From Mytilus trossulus (lineage: Eukaryota): 64,000 nucleotides of DNA. Shown piece after piece: positions 357 to 61,456 of this stretch (position 1 is the stretch's first letter; each line of letters starts with the position of its first letter). Made by a program: the position numbers and the translations under genes. The stretch spans positions 10,292,001 to 10,356,000 of the forward strand of contig NC_086379.1 of NCBI RefSeq assembly GCF_036588685.1. The letters run 5' to 3'. Under the pieces are notes generated by a model. It was not told the origin of the DNA. It saw nothing but the letters and a program-made list of their open reading frames with translations, and did not search any database.

Positions 357-945
357 AAAGTAAAATCATTCAAAAAATGCTGAACTCCGAGGAACGGAAA
401 GTCCCTAATTAAATGTCAAAATCAAAAGCTCAAACACATCAGACGGATGGATAACAATTATCATATTCCTGACTTGGTACATGTATTTTCTTATGCAGAA
501 AGTGGTAGATTAAACCTGGTTGTATAGCTAGCTTAACCTCCCATTTGTATTCAAGTCGCATAAAATGTCATCATATTGACAACGATGTGTGAACAAAACA
601 AACATGTAAAAAATTTTAAAAATATAGGTACAGCAGTCAACATTGTGTTAAAATCTCAATCATTATAAAAACAAACAAATATGTAACAAAGAAGCACAAT
701 AAGTCAAATAGACAAAGCACATTAGCCAAAATGCAAGACAAGACTATTTATATCTATCATAGCAAAAAAAAACAATAAGGGGATGTGTAAGTACATATCA
801 TCGTCATATGTAACAAAGAAGCATAAAAGGCATATAAATAAAGCACAACTATAGCAGCAATGAAAGACAAGAATACACAAATTTTGCCATTAAATAATAA
901 CACAATGAAAAGATCTATAAGTGCAGTGTTAACAACCGTCACAAA
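357..945 (-). mobile_element. Dispersed repeat family A, copy 1 (contains a degenerate twister-P5 motif at ~460-550)
   Basis: Clear similarity to 17884-18300, 31561-31708, 38780-39026, 42521-42688 and 48630-48915. Strand is that of the ribozyme-sense reading; boundaries approximate. Confidence 0.8.
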
Positions 946-2868: not shown

Positions 2869-3270
2869 AAATTCAGAAAGGAAATGGGGAATGTATCAAA
2901 TCGACAATAACCGGACCATAGATCACACAACAGACGGAGGGCAACCTATGGGTCTTCAATGTAGTTATAAACTCCCAAACCCGTAGGCGTCCTTCAACTG
3001 TCCCATTAACAAATATGTATACTAGTACAGTGATAATGAACGTCATACTTAACTCCGAATTATAGACAACAAACAAAATAAAAAATCATACAAGACTTAC
3101 AAAGGCCAGAGGCTCCTGACTTAGGACAGGGACAATATTGCGGAGGGGTTAAACATGTTTATGAGATCTCAACCCTCCCCTATACCTCTAGCCAAAGTAG
3201 AAAAGTAATTACAAAACAATACGCACATTAAACTTCAGTTCGAGAGAAGTCCGAGGATGTAACAAAAGAA
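2869..3270 (-). mobile_element. Dispersed repeat family B, copy 1 (degenerate twister at 3104-3193)
   Basis: Homologous to 8874-9200, 43736-44070 and 60643-61456. Confidence 0.85.
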
Positions 3271-4435: not shown

Positions 4436-5265
4436 ATAGATATAGGAAGATGTGGTGTGAGTGCCAATGAGACAACTCTCCATCCAAATAACAATTTAAA
4501 AATTAAACCATTATAGGTTAAAGTACGGCCTTCAACACGGAGCCTTGGCTCACACCGAACAACAAGCTATAAAGGGCCCCAAAATTACTAGTGTAAAACC
4601 ATTCAAACGGGAAAACCAACGGTCTAATCTATATAAACAAAACGAGAAACGAGACACACGTATATATTACATAAACAAACGACAACTACTGTACATCAGA
4701 TTCCTGACTTAGGACAGGTGCAAACATTTGCAGCGGGATTAAACGTTTTAATGGGCCCAAACCTTCTCCCTTTTTCTGAAACAATAGCATAACATCACAA
4801 CATATAAAAACATACGATAAAATATCAATTAGCAGACTTAACTCAATCAAAAAACGTATGATTACACAAAGAACGAATAAATTTTATCTGCGATATCTGA
4901 ATACAAATGCACAGTTAATTAAATATTAGAGACAAACAGTCATGACCAAAAGGCTATCAAATAAATTCAAACACACTGAGAAATATTTAACCAATCAATG
5001 TTCACTTTAGAAAAAACCCGTTTTTTTATAATCTTGAAGTTTATACAAATGTTGTAAGAATAAGTGAAAAATTGAAGATATTACAAATAATCAAAGCTGG
5101 TATACAGCCAAGATCCATACAAATAAAAAATGACAAAAAAGCATTATAAACAGTATCAACAGGTCGAATTAACAAGAAAATACGATTTGAGAGTACTCGC
5201 AGTTACTGACAGCTAGTTAAAAGCCAAAACCAATTAATAGTAAAAAATCATGCATCAGAGACTAA
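4436..5265 (-). mobile_element. Dispersed repeat family C, long copy
   Basis: 4436-4800 is almost identical to the reverse complement of 39104-39464; also matches 62279-62463. Right boundary approximate. Confidence 0.85.
4696..4779 (-). ncRNA. Twister ribozyme, type-P5 permutation (family C, intact core)
   Basis: Minus strand reads TCAGA AAAA GGGA GA AGG TTTGGGCCCATTAAAACGTT T^AA TCCC GC T GCAAATGTTTGC A CCTG T CCT AA GT CAGG AA TCTGA. Pairings: P5 TCAGA/TCTGA, P2 TCCC/GGGA, T1 CCT/AGG, T2 GC/GT, P3, P4 CCTG/CAGG. Predicted cut between 4741 and 4740. Confidence 0.85.
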
Positions 5266-5913: not shown

Positions 5914-6618
5914 ATGAACAACAGTTTCACAAATGAAACTTACATTTCTGAACAAAAGATTTCTCATTTTTTACAAACTATATTCATATTCCTGTATTCT
6001 ATAATCGTAGTAATAGCTATAGGGGGGAATAGTATTGTTTGTTATCTAGTGTATGCGTACAAACGGATGAGAACTATTCCAAATTATTTTCTTGTTAATT
6101 TAGCCATAAGTGATATAATCATGGCGATTTTCTGTATTCCGTTCACATTTGTGGCCAATCTTTTATTAAACTATTGGCCATTCGGTGAAACCATGTGCCC
6201 TTTAGTGAGTTATTTACAAGTGGTAGCAGTGTTTCTGAGCGCATATACATTGGTTGCAATGAGTTTTGACCGCTATATCGTCATTGTTCACCCATTCAGA
6301 CCACGAATTACTACAAGAAAAACCCTTTGTGTTATTATTATCATCTGGATATTATCTTTATCTATACCCATTCCAACATTAATCAAATCAAAAGTGCAAT
6401 ATTATTCAAACACAAGTGGCCAATGTTTAGAAACATGGGATAACAATCACACTTTAATGTATGCATACAGTACAGGAATAATGGTATTACATTTTTTCGG
6501 ACCATTAGTTGTGTTGATATTCTGCTATAGTAGAATAGGATATAACATTTGGAACAAAACTCTTCATGGAAATGATGAAAATAAAAGACGATTACAGTTA
6601 GCGTCAGCAAAACAAAAG
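5914..6618 (+). CDS. Coding exon (235 codons, N-terminus to TM5/ICL3) of a class A neuropeptide GPCR, RYamide/luqin receptor-like
   Basis: N-glycosylation sequons NNS/NET, TM1 AIGGNSIVCY, TM2 NLAISD, YWPFG..MC, DRY, TM4 W, TM5 FFGPL..LIFCY and basic ICL3 end ASAKQK. AAG|GTGCGT donor at 6618/6619 in phase 0; the ORF track's last 8 residues are intronic read-through. Confidence 0.92.
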
Positions 6619-8873
6619 GTGCGTATATGTATTTTATCATATTAATTGACTATTTAAGGTCATGGGCATAGGTATCAATATTTCTTTTCTTTATATGAAA
6701 AAAATCATGCAAATGTTTTGTCCGTAAACATTATGATGTGATATCATATGTTTTCCGAAAGGTGTCTGTTCGTGATAAGAATTAATTAGTAGTGCCATTA
6801 GGCATCTTCAAGTGAGAGATGACCAAAGTCGTCCTGACACATAACAGAGATAATTGGACGAAAACAGACTTTTGATATTGATTAAACTAATAGTTATATA
6901 AGAATCAATGATTTGAAATATCATACGTTTTTAGAGTTGTCTAAGACCATTCCCGACATAAATTCAGACAGAAATTTTTTATAGAAAGCTAACCTTTAAT
7001 TTGGAAATAATTAATTTAACGATAATGTTGTCGTTTTTAGGACGATTGGATTTTGAACATGAATTCTTAAAAAGGGATTTTATTAACATTCATATTCAAA
7101 TCAAGGTCACTTTTCGAGAATATTGTAAACAACTCTTGGCCTTTAAACTATAATTGAAAATCGAAAAATAATGCATTTATCTCGTTTATCATTTGAAATA
7201 TAAATGATTAAATTCTTTCAAAATAGGTGCATTACTAATTCGAATTTCAATTATCAACCGGTGCCAAAGTTGTATGCACTATTTAAGTAAAATCTGGGAC
7301 ATAGCCCATTTGATGTAAATTTAACGTAGGTAAATCTCAGTCTTCGTACATGGAAAAACCTTCAGCAACAAGAATAAAAGTAGATGCTGAATATATTTCA
7401 ACGTAAAAGTAACCCTACAACAACAAAAAAAGAAGAGAGCAACATACATTTTGCGACTCAACAACAAAAAACTCATTCCGTGCAGCGGTTATTTTTTTCA
7501 GTTAATTTCGGGATTGATCGTTATTGATTTCGAATTCACATTATCAAAACTCTAATCAAACTTCAGGAAAACTTCAGGAAAAGCGCTAAATGTCAACGAA
7601 AATATGTTTTCCGTAACAATAATTTCAGATTCAACCTTTTCAGATATTTATTCATGTATGAACTAAAACTCTAGTCTTACAACTGCTTAACAAGGAAGTA
7701 AAAAGACAAACGAAATTCAGAAAAAGGTTTATAATGTGTAACATTATTTGAATATTGATTAATGTGATACGTTTTCTGGCCCATTTTTTATTCTGTGGAA
7801 TGAAATTAAAGGGTTTTTACATTCGAACAAGTGTCGTTCTTTTTCGTAAACGAAGGAAAATTATAACTAATTTTTGTACATATCCCAACAGCATAAGGAT
7901 GAAAGTATCATTTTAGTTGGTGCACGTAATCTGCTTTGATTTTTATAACAAAAACACGAATATCTGAATGCATTATAAAACTTAAAGTTAAAACTATGTT
8001 AATTGTTATGCAATAGGATATATAAGCACCACCATTACCCAAATAGTTATTTCTGTATATAAACACCGCCAAATTTAAAACAAATATGTGATATTCAACG
8101 GTTATCCTCAGTTACAGCCCAAAAAGGAAATGTTATTAATTTTGTCACCTCCAAGATATCAGCGCTATGCTTAACTTGTCTGATAACTATACGGTTCAGT
8201 ATAGTCCTTTTTTTGTTACTCACTACATCAGATATTTCAAAAAGCTGGTCTGTTTTTGGAACTAAGGTGTCAAATAATGTTTTCTTCGATCTGTATGAAT
8301 TTCAGTACAAAATGAAACTCATCTTCAATGATTCCTCGAACTACATATATATTACATGTATGCGACTATCTCCTCTTTTTTTTTATTGGAAAACTTTTTA
8401 ACACCCAGATTCAATAGAAAGTTTAAACTAACTATAGTGTCATTAATCGAATAAAAGTCAGAATGTTTTTATACATTAAAACATAGAAGGTTTTTGAAGT
8501 AGCCATTTTCATTCTCAATTTTATCATCTTTCAGGAAATCGTTGAATGTGAAAATTAAGGATGTATGACTATTCTGTTACAGTTAAATTTACAAAGTTGT
8601 TAAACATGGTCTGAAGGAATAACTTTATTATCACGATACAATCAAATGGAACTGACAAAGTAATTTGGCTAAAAACCATTCTATAGAAAAAGGACGAAAT
8701 AGTATTTAACCATTGAACAGTTTCAACATACTTTTATATATAATGCATGATGAAAAACAGAATTGTATTTCGCTGTCTAGACAAAAGTTTCGACCAGTAG
8801 ATTAAACCTCGCAACTTAACATACATAGCTAATAGATACTACATGTACACATTTATTCATGTATGGTATTGAT

Positions 8874-9200
8874 TACATTGGTTAGAGGTATAGTGGGAGG
8901 GTTGAGATCTCACAAACATGTTTAACCCCGCCGCATTTTTGCGCCTGTCCCAAGTCAGGAGCCTCTGGCCTTTGTTAGTCTTGTATTATTTTAATTTTAG
9001 TTTCTTGTGTACAATTTGAAAATTAGTATTGCGTTCATTATCACTGAACTAGTATATATTTGTTTAGGGGCCAGCTGAAGGACGCCTCCGGGTGCGGAAA
9101 TTTCTCGCTTCATTGAAGACCTGTTGGTGACCTTCTGCTGTTGTTTTTTTATTTGGTCGGGTTGTTGTCTCTTTGACACATTCCCCATTTCCATTCTCAA
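8874..9200 (+). mobile_element. Dispersed repeat family B, copy 2
   Basis: Near-identical to the reverse complement of 43736-44070. Confidence 0.9.
8880..8970 (+). ncRNA. Twister ribozyme, type-P5 permutation (family B, near intact)
   Basis: P5 GGTTAGAGGT(8880-89)/GCCTCTGGCC(8961-70); P2 CCCC(8926-29)/GTGG(8893-96), one mismatch; catalytic GA 8897-98; T1 GGG(8899-8901)/CCC(8949-51); T2 GC/GT; P3 CGCA-TTTT-TGCG; P4 CCTG/CAGG; predicted cut T8923^A8924. Confidence 0.85.
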
Positions 9201-17883: not shown

Positions 17884-18300
17884 AAAGTAAAAACACAAAA
17901 ATACTGAACTCCGAGGACAATTCTAAAAGGAAAGTCCAAAATCAAAAGGCAAAATCAAAAGTCCAAACACATCAAACGAATGGATAACCACTGTCATATT
18001 CCTAACTTGGTACAGGCATATTCTAATGTAGAAAATTGTGGATTGAACCTGGTTTTATAGATAGCTAAACCTCTCACTTGTATGACAGTCGCATCAAATT
18101 TCATTTTATGGTTAACTATGCGTGAACAAAACAAACATACTCAAAGAGAAAAAATGTCAAAAATAGGGGTACATCAGTCAACACTGTGTTATCATCTTAA
18201 CCACTATAAAAACAACAAATGAAACGAAGAAGCACAAAAAGGCATACATCAAATTTAACATCCTCATTTTGCATATCTTATACGATTTTGTTTATCTATG
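17884..18300 (-). mobile_element. Dispersed repeat family A, copy 2
   Basis: Homologous to 357-700 and the other A copies. Confidence 0.85.
17990..18089 (-). ncRNA. Twister-P5 motif (family A)
   Basis: Minus strand reads ACTGTCATA CAA GTGA GA GGT ...CCAGGTT C^AA TCC AC A ATTTTCT ACATT AGAATAT G CCTG T ACC AA GT TAGG AA TATGACAGT. P5 is a perfect 9-bp stem; T1 ACC/GGT; T2 AC/GT; P2 is short or imperfect. Confidence 0.7.
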
Positions 18301-25739: not shown

Positions 25740-26145
25740 TGTGTGTTCTTGTTTCGAGCTGTTACATCACTGGCCAAGGTTAGAGGAGGGTTTGAGCCTT
25801 AACACCAGTTTAACCATTGCAACTTTTTGTATGTGCTTGTCCCAAATCAAGATCATGTGATTCAGACTGAGTGATTGTCGTTTGCTGATTTCATTCATAT
25901 TGGGTTTCACAGAGGAACATGACTGTCATTGTTCTGTAGATAAGTCAGGCCATTTGTTTCTCGTTTGAGTTGTATTGTATTTGTTATTTCGCTGCCTTTT
26001 ATAGCTGAATATGCAATATGAGTCTTGCTCATTGTTAAAGGTCAATAAGGAGGAACTATCATATAGTGTTAACGTCTATGTCATTTTGGTCTCTGGTGAA
26101 GAGTTGGCTCATTGACAATTATACAACATCTTCTTATTTTTATAT
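25740..26145 (+). mobile_element. Decayed repeat family E (related to C at its 3' end) with a degenerate twister motif at ~25770-25855
   Basis: GA GGG ... T^AA ... G CTTG T CCC AA AT CAAG A; 3' end gagttggctcattgacaattatacaacatcttctt resembles the family C end; a similar 3' fragment lies at 11960-12075. Confidence 0.6.
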
Positions 26146-39026: not shown

Positions 39027-39103
39027 GTATATTTAAGAGTCTATTTACATTGTAGTTATGATTTATTTTAAGAGGTCAGTTGAGAAACAAACAAAGTATA
39101 TGT

Positions 39104-39464
39104 TGTGATGTTATGCTATTGTTTCAGAAAAAGGGAGAAGGTTTTGGCCCATTAAAACGTTTAATCCCGCTGCAAATGTTTGCACCTGTCCTAAGTCAGG
39201 AATCTGATGTACAGTAGTTGTCGTTTGTTTATGTCATATATACGTGTTTCTCGTTTCTCGTTTTGTTTATATAGATTAGACCGTTGGTTTTCCCGTTTGA
39301 ATGGTTTTACACTAGTAATTTTGGGGCCCTTTATAGCTTGTTGTTCGGTGTGAGCCAAGGCTCCGTGTTGAAGGCCGTACTTTAACCTATAATGGTTTAA
39401 TTTTTAAATTGTTATTTGGATGGAGAGTTGTCTCATTGGCACTCACACCACATCTTCCTATATC
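39104..39464 (+). mobile_element. Dispersed repeat family C, young copy
   Basis: Almost identical to the reverse complement of 4436-4800. Confidence 0.9.
39124..39207 (+). ncRNA. Twister ribozyme, type-P5 permutation (family C, intact core)
   Basis: P5 TCAGA(39124-28)/TCTGA(39203-07); P2 GGGA(39133-36)/TCCC(39165-68); GA 39137-38; T1 AGG(39139-41)/CCT(39190-92); T2 GC/GT; P3 TGCAA-ATGT-TTGCA; P4 CCTG/CAGG; predicted cut T39162^A39163. Confidence 0.87.
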
Positions 39465-40093
39465 TTAAGTCAAACTCACAAAAATAATACTTTTTTTTTC
39501 ATTGATACAATAACAATATTTTGCCAAAGTCATATTAGAAGTTATTGACAAAATATTGTTGATGATTACAGGAAGACGATTTTGCAGTATTGTTTGAACT
39601 GTCGTATTGTACTTTGTAGAATCTTATAGGACTTAAATAAAGATGGGCGTGAATATTGACAAATTGTTTGCTGGGTATATTTAACATATATTGATACATG
39701 AAATTATTACCGATACAAATTATGTACCTTCAGGTTCCCTGGTTCCATATAAGCGAAACATACTTACAGACACTAAAAGTAGTGATATTCCGGTAACAGT
39801 ATGGACAAATGCAATAATTATGCTGGTACTGGTATAACATGTATAAGTAATACTGAATCATTTACCTTTAACTTGTTTTTCATCGGCTATCGACCACAAG
39901 TCGTTTACCCTCACTCAGTGTGTCAGAGGCCTTCCAGCAGGGATTTGAACAGAATGAAAGAAAAAAGTGCGTGGATGTGCATGAGAAGGATGTTTTAAGT
40001 ATTCAACATGTAAGTAAATACACAAGGTTTAGTCCTCTGCTAGTTATTCTTATAAGAAGTTTTATGCGTTTAGAAAGAGTAGAAATATTTTAA

Positions 40094-42350
40094 CAAAAAT
40101 TAAACTTTGAAAAACAGCTTTTAAAATGTAAAAAAATAATAGCGGATTGGAGTAAAAGAAATCTTACTATTATAGGAAAGATAGTAATCATCAAATCACT
40201 TGTTTTGCCAAACCTAACATATATTGCATCAAACACTTTAATTCCTAAAGAAATGTTGCAAAATTTTAAAACTTTGATATATAATTTTATATGGAAAGGC
40301 AAAAAAGACAAAATAAAAAGATCCACACTTACAAAAGATTTTTTGGAAGGTGGGCTTAAAATGACAGACATTGATGTTTACATAAAATCATTGCATATCA
40401 ATTGGATTCTAAAATTAAACGAAGATAAAAATGATAATTGGACAATCATTCCAAAATTTTATTTCAACAAATTAGGAAAAAATCTTCTTGTATTCAAAAT
40501 GAATTTAAAGAGTATTAAAGACATTGATAAAAATAAGTTACAAAATATACCAGACTTCTACAAGCAACTAATTAAAGATTGGATTAGTGAAAAAGGAGGG
40601 AACACAAAAGATCCCAAAAGATTTTTTGAAATCAGAAAACAAGTTTTGTGGGGTAATGATAATATTAGGTTTAACAGAAAATGTCTAAACTTTGACGATT
40701 GGATAAAAAGCGATATAATTAATATAAATGATATCATTGATGAACAAGGTAAAATCTCTGAAACTACAATCTTATCTAAGCTTAAATATAAACAAAATTG
40801 GATAAACCAAATATATATGTTAAAACAAGCTATACCAAAGAAGTGGAAATTAATTCTTTGTACTGAAGAATCCATCAAAACTAAAGTTAAAGTTGTTAAC
40901 GACTTAAAAATTAGGTATACAACAATAACTCGATTAACAAGCACTAGAGAACTCTATAAAATATTCAAACTAAAAGAAAATCATGAAAAACCAAACGGTT
41001 TTCTTTTATGGGAAAAATTACTTGACAAAAATTTAAATAACAAGTTCAAAAATAACTTTGTTTTTATTTTTCAATATCTCACTGACAACAGATTGAAAAT
41101 ATTTAGATGGAAACTTATTCACTATATTCTGCCATGTAATGAACTATTAAAAAAGTGGAAATTTTTTGAAGACAACTTATGTAAGCATTGTAAAGAAAAA
41201 GACAACTATGAACACTTTTTTGTCAACTGCTTATTTAATACAGACTTCCTAAAAATAGCAATGAAATTAATGAACTCCCTAGGTATAGACAAAAACATTT
41301 TAAGTCTTGAAAATCTAGTAATAGGGTACAAAATTGAAGACTCAGCATACTTTGAGATTAACTACATATTAACAATAATATCCTTTTCATTATATAAAGC
41401 ATATTACGTCTCAGAAAAGAAAACCAAAAAAAATAAACATTTTGAAAATTTTCCAAAAAGAAATTTCAGATATTATTGAAATGAACAATTTTAATAACAA
41501 AAATAATAGTAAGACAATTCTTAAAACAAATAAATTTATTGAAGATTATCAAAAAAATCAGAATTAAATCAGTTTTAAATGTCTGAATATTTCATTATAA
41601 AAGTACAAAACGTAAACACAATTGTTAATTGTTTACATGCCATATATGGTCATGTTTATTCACAGGTTAAATCATGCATGTCGACATGTGTTACAAATAT
41701 GTTTGTAATAATGTTCAACCATGCATAAGCAACGCAATGGTACATATTATTGTTTTATTCATAAACATAAAAGAAAAAACATGTGTAATCACGATTATTT
41801 AATAATTTATTCATAGTGTAGACAAATTGTGAATTGTGCACGCTAAAATGAATGATTTATAACTTGTGTAATACATATACACGACGACATACAATAGATT
41901 AGTAGAAATTTAAACAAAAATGGTATACTTACCAAACTTTATATTATGTTAAATCCTGTTTATAAAAGAATGTTAGACACACTCGGTAATGCGATAACGC
42001 ACATGCTTGTCGAACTTTTACTAATCCCAATTTCTTTCAATGGAACACGGATCATTATAAAATCGATAACGGAAATAATTCCGGAAAATTTCAGATATAA
42101 AAAAAAAAGACAAGAATTTTTTTAACAAAGATCTGTATGTGTATTCACAATATTTATTTAATATATTTGTGATATCAATTATAACTATAGATACTAATAT
42201 TATGAATAAATTATATCTTACCAAATAGTGCTTCCCTAAACTATAAGGTAAACTAACATGAGGGATACTAAGTTACAAGCTGTAAACTTGGTAAATTGTA
42301 ACAGCAAATTTGAAATAAAGATATTTATTACGTTTAAAAAAAAATAAAAA
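40094..42350 (+). mobile_element. 5'-truncated LINE (Tx1/L1 clade): ORF2 C-terminal region, 3' UTR and A-rich tail
   Basis: Open frame 40094-41479 with WSKRNLTIIGK..IKSL, FIWKGK..KIKR..L...GGL and a C-terminal CKHC-x8-HFFVNC zinc knuckle; AATAAA at 42314-19 followed by an A-rich tail at 42336-50. Confidence 0.85.
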
Positions 42351-42520: not shown

Positions 42521-42688
42521 AAAAAGTAAATAAAAAAAAAAACTGAACTCCAAGGAAAATTCAAACACGGAAAGTCCATAACCAATTGGCAAAATCAAAT
42601 GAAAAAACACATGAAACGAATGGACAGCAACTGTCATATTCCTGACTTTGTACAGGCATTTTTCAAATGTAGAAAATGGTGGATTGAA
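42521..42688 (-). mobile_element. Family A fragment whose 5' end lies at the predicted twister cleavage site
   Basis: Homology to A2 stops at ggattgaa (42688); predicted cut between 42686 and 42685. Confidence 0.8.
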
Positions 42689-43735: not shown

Positions 43736-44070
43736 AAAATTGAGAATGGAAATGGGGAATGTGTCAAAGAGACAACAACCCGACCAAATAAAAAACAGCA
43801 GCAGAAGGTCACCAACAGGTCTTCAATGTAGCGAGAAATTCCCGCATCCGGAGGCGTCTTTCAGCTGGCCCCTAAACAAATATATACTAGTTGAGTGATA
43901 ATGAACGCCATACTAATTTACAAATTGTACACAAGAAACTAAAATTAAAATAATACAAGACGAACAAAGGCCAGAGGCTCCTGACTTGGGACAGGCGCAA
44001 AAATGCGGCGGGGTTAAACATGTTTGTGAGATCTCAACCCTTCCCCTATACCTCTAACCACTGTAGAAAA
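43736..44070 (-). mobile_element. Family B copy 3; twister at 43969-44059 with catalytic G->A substitution
   Basis: Near-identical to B2, but the minus strand reads GGGG AA GGG instead of GGGG GA GGG. Confidence 0.88.
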
Positions 44071-48629: not shown

Positions 48630-48915
48630 TGGCTGCTGTACCCATATTTTGACTGTTTTATTTATTGTGTCTGTTTAGTTAACGCATCATTGTAAATATA
48701 ACGGAATTTGATGAGACTGTCAACAAAGTAAGACGGTTAGCGCTATAAAACCAGGTTTAATCCACCATTTTCTACATTTGAAAAGGCCTGTACCAATTCA
48801 GGAATATGACAGTTCATGTCCATTTGTTTTTGATGTGTTTTGTTATTTGATTTTGCCATGTGGACTTTCCGAATTGATTTTCCTCTAAGTTTTGTATTTT
48901 TGTGATTTAAACTTT
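48630..48915 (+). mobile_element. Family A-type copy directly abutting the RT fragment; degenerate twister at 48716-48813
   Basis: ACTGTCA...GA CGG TTAGCGCTA TAAAACCAGGTTT^AATCCACC...GCCTGTACCAATTCAGGAATATGACAGT. Confidence 0.8.
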
Positions 48916-60642: not shown

Positions 60643-61456
60643 AAATTTGAGAATGGAAATGGGGAATGTGTCAAAGAGACAACAACCCGACATTAGAAAA
60701 AAAACAACAGCAAAAGGTCACCAGCAGGTCTTCAATGTAGCGCGAAATTCCCGCACCCGAAGGCGTCCTTCAGCTGGCCCCTAAACAAATATATACTAGT
60801 TCAGTGATAATGAACGCCACACTAATTTCCAAGTTGTACACACGAAACTAAAATTAAAATAATACGCAATAAACAAAGGCCAGATGCTCCTGATTTGGGA
60901 CAGGCACAAAACTACGGCGGGGTTAAACAGGTTTATGAGATCTCAATCCTCCCCCTATACCTCTAGCCAGTGTAGAAAAATAAACGCATAACAATACGCA
61001 AATTAAAAATGCAGTTCAAGAGAAGTCCGAGTTCGATGTCAGAAGATGTAACCAAAAACAAATTAAACAAAATGACAATAATACATAAATAACAACTGAC
61101 TACTAGCAGTTAACTGACATGCCAGCTCCAGACTTCAATTAAACTGATTGAAATATTATGATTTTATCATATGAATATCAGGCACAATCCTTCCCGTTAC
61201 CGGTTTAGTATCATACCATCGTAACATATATGAGAAGATCATAACCCGTGTCACGCCAACAACTGGTTATTAAATAAGTGTATTTAGTTCCGATGCAAAG
61301 AACCTATAAGTGAATCAATATTAACGCCAACATATGTAATCTTTAATGACCTGACAACAGTATCGTATCTATATCCCTTCTTAATAAGTCTATTTAAAGG
61401 TTTTGTTAGTTTCTGAGTTGAATACTGACATGTTTGTGTTGTATAAAGAATATTTC
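60643..61456 (-). mobile_element. Family B long copy: end of a coding frame (61454-61284), 3' UTR and degenerate twister (60878-60968)
   Basis: 60643-61050 is homologous to B1-B3; the upstream part has a 56-codon open frame ending ...LIGSLHRN*. Confidence 0.8.

Follow-up and report, generated by a model that had tools for sequence, protein, structure and literature searches.

Two palindromes in the place of helix P1: a putative self-pairing module in a twister of Naiad-type Penelope-like elements

Twister ribozymes predicted in the 3' UTR of a Naiad-type Penelope-like element of Mytilus trossulus carry two adjoining palindromes in the loop that takes the place of helix P1, and these palindromes may form a conserved RNA-RNA self-pairing module. 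The explanation preferred here, which is held at roughly even probability, is that the linker was selected for self-pairing, that the twister carrying it is chemically competent even in the absence of P1, and that the linker couples two copies and modulates rather than creates activity. Two twister copies would then probably pair with each other. This explanation is built on the observed anatomy of the modules, the lack of any structure of the linker in cis, the compensatory evolution of the palindromes, and the host element with its tandem layout.

Results

The window, i.e. the whole analysed stretch of 64,000 nucleotides (contig NC_086379.1, positions 10,292,001 to 10,356,000), belongs to an AT-rich animal genome of 1.3 Gb. 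The P4 hairpin was used as the anchor for a motif search of these 64 kb, after which the copies were oriented and compared. Eleven motif copies were found against 0.08 expected, and they fall into four families: A (n=4; anchors at 467-, 18000-, 42640- and 48787+), B (n=4; 3114-, 8944+, 43979- and 60888-), C (n=2; 4702- and 39185+) and D (n=1; 25836+).

With its structure assigned by hand, the motif is a predicted circularly permuted twister of type P5, a permutation for which Roth et al. are said to be the source (in 2014). Read from 5' to 3', it consists of the P5 5' strand, an A-rich joiner, the P2 3' strand, GA, the T1 strand (GGG or AGG) and a linker of 20-25 nt, followed by U/AA with the cleavage site at the slash, the P2 5' strand, GC (T2), the P3 hairpin, P4 with the loop GUCCNAAGUC, an A and the P5 3' strand. 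All helices and both pseudoknots pair in the family C module at 4696-4779 (-), whose 5' half comprises P5a (4775-4779), P2b (4767-4770), the T1 strand (4762-4764) and the linker replacing P1 (4742-4761). The cleavage site lies between U-1 (4741) and A+1 (4740) and is followed by P2a (4735-4738), T2 (4733-4734), P3 (4719-4732), P4 with its loop (4703-4718) and P5b (4696-4700). This module is part of a 5'-truncated element copy at 4438-4806 (-), which is 99.2% identical to 39097-39465 (+) according to blastn.

A pairing script found every pair of P2, P3, P4, P5, T1 and T2 to be standard in families B and C, with T2 consisting of G.U plus C-G in both. The first pair of P2 is C-G in B and U-A in C, and the same compensatory exchange is present in the third of the three T1 base pairs. 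P3 and P5 are unrelated in sequence between the two families, and their pairing is kept in both. The core nucleotides, namely the AA 3' of the scissile bond, the P4 loop beginning with GUCCNAAG and the GA-GGG strand, are present in B, C and a further family, E, which is described below. Family A has GUACC in the P4 loop, a shifted T1 register, one P2 mismatch and one T2 mismatch; the family D copy pairs more poorly than A, and its T2 is absent. By these predicted pairings, families B and C satisfy the structural definition of a twister, P1 excepted.

No helix P1 was found beside the cleavage site. As had been claimed in the earlier note, no family forms a normal P1 hairpin, and every P1 region remained unfolded with ViennaRNA (0.0 kcal/mol). 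A canonical P1 with bulges was sought by hand and by folding as well, and none was found. The missing helix does not exclude membership in the twister class, since P1 is dispensable for catalysis according to passages of PMC11662667 that cite mini-twister work; the same paper reports that twisters were "essentially impervious" to P1 imperfections in high-throughput testing. Compared with type-P5 twisters (Rfam clan CL00120), the modules are alike in the N/AA cleavage site, P2, P4 with its GUCCNAAGUC loop, the GA-GGG strand, the T1 and T2 pseudoknots, the optional P3 and the open P5, with P2 and T1 covarying between families. They differ in that a 20-25 nt unstructured linker with two palindromes, and no P1 helix, joins the T1 strand to the cleavage site.

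Scans with Rfam gave no usable twister match at gathering thresholds or at E up to 10. There were no twister matches in the window at gathering thresholds, and the best relaxed matches were partial ones to twister-P1 that spanned P3 and P4 with 13.3-14.4 bits, compared to a gathering value of 67.2 bits; the family C module reached 14.4 bits. For the full-length element (locus L031), no Rfam twister match was obtained even at E up to 10. Because P1 is missing, Rfam-style searches overlook tens of thousands of twisters.

The palindrome coordinates given in the earlier note for families B, C and A were checked base by base and all proved correct. In the family C module, the first palindrome (pal1), TGGGCCCA, lies at 4752-4759 (-) and has a homodimer energy of -15.7 kcal/mol and a hairpin energy of 0.0 kcal/mol; the second (pal2), AAACGTTT, lies at 4741-4748 (-) with a homodimer energy of -5.3 kcal/mol. 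The final base of pal2 adjoins the scissile bond on its 5' side, which places it at 4741, with the bond between 4741 and 4740. The family B module at 8880-8969 (+) contains pal1 TGAGATCTCA at 8903-8912 and pal2 AAACATGTTT at 8914-8923, with the scissile bond between 8923 and 8924. Both palindromes are also present in the family B copies at 3114-3171 (-) (pal1 3162-3171, pal2 3151-3160, A+1 3150) and 43979-44036 (-) (pal1 44027-44036, pal2 44016-44025, A+1 44015). Family A comprises a short subfamily at 48735-48803 (+), with pal1 TAGCGCTA at 48738-48745, pal2 AAACCAGGTTT at 48748-48758 and A+1 at 48759, and a long subfamily at 467-538 (-), with pal1 AGCTAGCT at 526-533, pal2 AACCAGGTT at 513-521 and A+1 at 511. 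The 8-nt length stated earlier for pal1 of family A needs a correction: the palindromes are present at these sites, and the one of the main A subfamily has 10 nt (TAGCTAGCTA).

Decay mutations occur in single copies. One substitution breaks pal1 in the second family C copy at 39140-39201 (+) (anchor 39185+; TTGGCCCA; pal2 39155-39162, A+1 39163), and pal1 is decayed in the family A copy at 18000-18071 (-) (AGCTATCT; pal2 18046-18054, A+1 18044). In the family B copy at 60888-60945 (-), pal1 is intact at 60936-60945, a single substitution disrupts pal2, and the P4 loop carries a mutation as well. The rare family D copy at 25789-25852 (+) has a linker (25791-25811) with only imperfect, G-U-containing self-complementarity.

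The linker has no structure in cis. From the T1 strand to the cleavage site, the minimum free energy of the monomer was 0.0 kcal/mol in 7/7 copies tested, and every palindrome taken alone gave the same value. Small stable hairpins at the palindromes were rejected on this energy and on their stems of 2-3 bp. ViennaRNA homodimers reached -10.9 to -18.0 kcal/mol for pal1 and -5.3 to -8.6 kcal/mol for pal2. With 0.0 kcal/mol for the monomers against -5.3 to -18.0 kcal/mol for the homodimers, the earlier description of the palindromes as poor hairpins and good intermolecular duplexes holds. Perfect palindromes of at least 8 nt occur at a rate of 0.006 per position in the window, and those of at least 10 nt at 0.002. 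Here, two of them adjoin in a slot of ~21 nt in several lineages with differing sequences, and a chance origin of these pairs is unlikely. Between the strand 3' of T1 and the strand 5' of the cleavage site, there is no complementarity in cis or in trans; therefore, palindrome pairing cannot rebuild a canonical P1.

For the genome-wide samples, 100 copies of each family were taken in the order of their positions on contig 1. Across the 1.3 Gb, at least seven perfect palindromes occupy the pal1 position: TGAGATCTCA in B, GGGATCCC in E, TGGGCCCA, TGGATCCA and TGGTACCA in C, and TAGCTAGCTA and TAGCGCTA in A. Family E is a new and abundant fifth family with a B-type core. At mirrored positions, its pal1 has G-C where the GAGATCTC of B has A-T, and at a length of 10 nt the palindrome closes by U-G pairs. 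In family C, the pal1 centre is GC in 52/100 copies, AT in 36/100 and TA in 4/100, with two further copies being decayed TA; the non-palindromic one-step intermediates GT and AC were seen in 1/100 each. Family C thus has three expanded subfamilies, each with a self-complementary pal1 centre. The two recurrent subfamilies of family A differ by exactly the central TA, and family B is itself invariant apart from singletons (n=100). The versions of pal2 are AAACATGTTT (B), AACATGTT (E), AAACGTTT (C), the odd palindrome AAACCAGGTTT (A) and, in one other copy, AAACTAGTTT; compared with B, exactly the central 2 nt (AT) are absent in C. Two single family E copies were observed that lack the entire linker (C1:12652092) or pal1 alone (C1:16881716), and neither was amplified.

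The earlier proposal that palindromy is conserved while sequence is not, to be examined over the genomic subfamilies, was borne out for A, B, C and E, including the seven perfect versions of pal1. It does not extend fully to family D, which is self-complementary only imperfectly via G-U pairs, or to pal2 of family A, which is odd. With two genomic copies, family D is too rare to be counted as a counter-example. A 34-place pattern anchored on 10 nt of family D returned chance matches only (~1,900-2,000 per strand vs ~900-1,000 in the control). Because the adjacent centre bases that covary cannot pair with each other in a hairpin, selection for the pairing of two copies is the best reading, and the constraint on pal1 suggests that the pairing partners are two molecules or two copies that lie far apart. 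Neither palindrome recurs in the 6.7 kb read around the full-length element at L031; therefore, the partner must be another copy.

Traces of cutting are found at the 5' ends of the copies. Among the 300 sampled copies, seven start exactly at A+1 (B 2/100, C 5/100, E 0/100), and in B and C unrelated DNA runs right up to this base. The spread of truncation points predicts only ~0.1-0.2 starts per position per 100 copies, so that seven starts at one position are a strong excess, even with an ambiguity of 1-2 nt. One family A copy in the window, at 42600-42688 (-), likewise begins at the predicted cleavage site (~42685), with the palindromes and the T1 strand absent. Retrotransposition of self-cleaved RNA would leave such starts, and copies that begin at the cleavage site therefore suggest cutting in vivo. 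B and C are young families in which the core is intact, and they probably cut in vivo.

A B/C chimera at G000:C1:9587731-9587764 joins B palindromes to a C core exactly at the GTTTAA cleavage site; such a joint would be expected if the reverse transcriptase had reached the end of a cleaved C RNA and then switched to a B RNA. In B, C and E, the 5' ends of truncated copies form a second cluster at -7 to -11, within pal2 or at its 5' edge, and pausing or template switching of the reverse transcriptase at the palindrome is a possible cause. In four raw-read RNA-seq runs, no accumulation of read starts was flagged at the cleavage site. These runs cover the region on both read directions with a depth that climbs toward the 3' end, and in three of them there is a 1.36-1.48-fold step across the site on one read direction compared to 1.08-1.11-fold on the other; as a sign of cleavage, this step is suggestive only. 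Circles of the retrozyme kind, or tandem mini-units that begin at the cleavage site, were considered and rejected, given only one such head-to-tail junction genome-wide and no RNA-seq back-joint at the site.

The twisters lie on the sense strand in the 3' UTR of the host element, with the cleavage site ~360 nt after the stop codon of its ORF. A majority profile of the non-coding 3' ends served to find the repeat boundaries only. Copies share a common 3' end ~295 nt past the cleavage site and have variable 5' ends, which is the pattern of 5'-truncated retroelements. Most copies are 5'-truncated, and solo truncated copies number in the thousands. Long copies reach an ORF with Penelope-type reverse-transcriptase motifs and with CxC and DKA, the motifs that Craig et al. 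(PMC8557442) use as Naiad diagnostics, and by these motifs the host is identified as a Naiad-type Penelope-like element. At least 97 copies are 98-99% identical across the reverse-transcriptase frame, and head-to-tail tandems occur at spacings of 4016 and 4035 bp. The upstream pieces of one copy gave no Pfam match for a GIY-YIG endonuclease, and no Rfam hammerhead match was found in the window or in L031:4760-5440.

According to PMC8557442, bivalve genomes are dominated by Naiads, which lack canonical hammerhead motifs. The element shares with this clade, as described by Craig et al. in 2021, the CxC and DKA motifs, an in-frame UGA plus SECIS, AT-rich insertion sites, tandem copies and the dominance in bivalves. 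In the described Naiads the hammerhead is absent, whereas here a twister stands at the equivalent place. No paper linking twisters to Penelope-like elements was found in the literature searched.

Several further features of the element and its surroundings were observed. At L031:3330, in a family B element (G000:C1:192500-199168), the reverse-transcriptase frame contains one in-frame TGA, and 26/26 other copies that were checked have the same codon. At L031:4827-4891, ~50 nt past the TAA stop, there is a SECIS_1 match (32.8 bits, E 1.4e-4), and the family B element looks like a selenoprotein-type Naiad as in clams (PMC8557442). RNA-seq reads exit the element at a ragged 3' end (L031:5417-5421) into variable AT-rich flanks. 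One recurrent 3' flank with ~280-350 reads per run in 3/4 runs indicates that a single locus or junction is highly represented. A further family has only the last ~55 nt of the element, since the RNA-seq depth doubles there. Two family C copies lie 473 bp apart in the same orientation (G000:C1:13553205 and 13553678) and form a tandem of short truncated copies. Elsewhere in the window, a 243-aa ORF at 5914-6645 (+) matches rhodopsin-family GPCRs (7tm_1, E 7e-47) and is probably a host gene exon among repeats, and a 424-aa ORF at 40205-41479 (+) has a zf-RVT domain and stems from a different retroelement.

Discussion

The palindromes most likely do not build the active site, because twister chemistry needs no P1. 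They would link one twister module to another, on separate element RNAs or in the two copies of a head-to-tail tandem, and the presence of the second copy would thereby be tied to cleavage or to another RNA step (RNA dimerisation, template switching). A symmetric dimer would be self-consistent: in the proposed geometry, pal1 would lead away from the core and pal2 would return to it, and each would be paired with its counterpart in the other copy. In family B, with its spacer of 1 nt, both duplexes would fit into one dimer only if they lie side by side. That the pairing takes place between RNAs, and what role it has, is what we infer; it may also involve cDNA or DNA, since palindromes read alike on both strands. 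The odd pal2 of family A, the imperfect linker of family D, the 0/100 family E copies that start at the cleavage site and the RNA-seq runs with no pile of read starts there count against a self-pairing module.

The earlier note had gone further and proposed efficient cleavage only as a dimer. The monomer would then be inactive or very slow, palindrome pairing would be needed for the active fold, and only tandem or multimeric transcripts would be cut, while solo copies in host transcripts would be spared. All the support for self-pairing, i.e. the energies and the compensatory palindromes, applies here too, and hammerheads of Penelope-like elements with a short palindromic stem III offer a precedent for action as dimers (PMC6765202). 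Without such a requirement, host RNAs would be cut by the thousands of truncated solo copies. Furthermore, the minimum free energy fold of the family B monomer contains an alternative 8-bp helix of GGGUUGAG with UUUAACCC, and a switch is conceivable because this helix traps the T1 strand, the cleavage-site AA and P2a. However, the competing helix has just 4 bp in families C, A and D, and a release of the core from the GGGUU/AACCC helix by dimerisation is unsupported, as the cofolded dimer (computed with no pseudoknots) retains the GGGU/AACC pairing in trans. In addition, the strands flanking the slot are not complementary, so a dimer cannot remake P1, and with P1 dispensable and its imperfections having no effect (PMC11662667), a monomer that lacks P1 need not be inactive. 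Cleavage restricted to dimers is therefore not supported and is judged unlikely. The broader proposal that P1 of the Naiad twister turned into a two-palindrome dimerisation switch, with cleavage gated by the meeting of two copies, convergent with the dimeric Penelope hammerheads and the first natural dimer-gated twister, is likewise a doubtful one.

Two weaker alternatives do away with the pairing of two RNAs. The linker could be indifferent to a monomeric P1-less twister, with its palindromy resulting from mutation bias, i.e. template switching in quasi-palindromes during reverse transcription, or from tiny stem-loops. The dispensability of P1 (PMC11662667) is in line with this, the family E copies that lack the linker or pal1 indicate that the core can exist without them, and the truncated 5' ends at -7 to -11 in pal2 suggest odd behaviour of the reverse transcriptase at palindromes. 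These deletion copies are singletons that were never amplified, however, the hairpins are unstable, and seven perfect palindromes in five lineages together with three self-complementary C centres are hard to obtain without selection on the amplifying copies, which makes an indifferent linker quite improbable. It is very unlikely that the palindromes have a role on DNA unconnected with the ribozyme, either as a symmetric site for a dimeric protein (an element enzyme or a host factor) or as a cruciform or cDNA structure. Palindromes are classic sites of dimeric proteins, the pseudo-LTRs of Penelope-like elements carry promoters (PMC6765202), and the sequence itself cannot tell the strand. Yet a single protein would not recognise all palindromes, because their half-sites differ completely between families (TGG, GAG, GGG, TAGC), and protein sites normally need no self-complementary centre dinucleotide. 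The closing of the 10-nt palindrome of E by U-G and the pairing of D via G-U are complementarity of the RNA type, and only by chance would they lie exactly where a sense-strand ribozyme should have its P1. Selection for self-pairing between two copies is thus the reading retained here.

Minimal hammerheads of Penelope-like elements were reportedly described by Cervera and de la Pena in 2014. According to passages of PMC6765202 that cite Lunse et al. (2017, PMC5785218), their stem III is short and palindromic, they function as dimers, and the tandem arrangement is believed to favour this. The analogy drawn in the earlier note with these hammerheads is closer than was claimed, because the twisters themselves sit in Penelope-like elements that form head-to-tail tandems. 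Both systems are alike in host class, position in the 3' region, tandem copies and a palindrome in place of a helix flanking the core, and the palindromes found here are unstable in cis. The differences are the ribozyme class, the number of palindromes (two here, one there) and the consequence of pairing: in the hammerheads the dimer makes the essential stem III, whereas here the missing P1 is dispensable (PMC11662667) and is not rebuilt, with the slot strands lacking complementarity. Twister variants are also carried by another retrotransposon, the RTE-type Perere-3 of Schistosoma mansoni, where T-variants have been shown to function in RNA processing (PMC8501958). [quoted passage not shown] An unpublished RTE twister case is mentioned in a passage of PMC7761336.

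The dimer initiation site of retroviral genomes is a palindromic RNA dimerisation site. The hatchet ribozyme forms a palindrome-mediated dimer in the crystal (PMC6561176). Common to both and to the twister linker is a short self-complementary stretch in an unpaired region, through which two identical RNAs are able to pair; the putative site described here differs in that it lies inside the ribozyme loop of a retrotransposon.

Conclusions

The predicted twister described here has covarying palindromes where P1 should be, and it belongs to a retroelement clade that had been regarded as lacking ribozymes. With its ~90 nt RNA and natural palindrome variants, it offers a clean experimental system. 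Penelope-like elements almost always carry hammerheads that seem to be dimeric. Naiads were the exception among these elements, and here a ribozyme of another class stands in the same place with compensatorily kept palindromes. This argues that the selected property may be that two copies must meet, and not the hammerhead itself.
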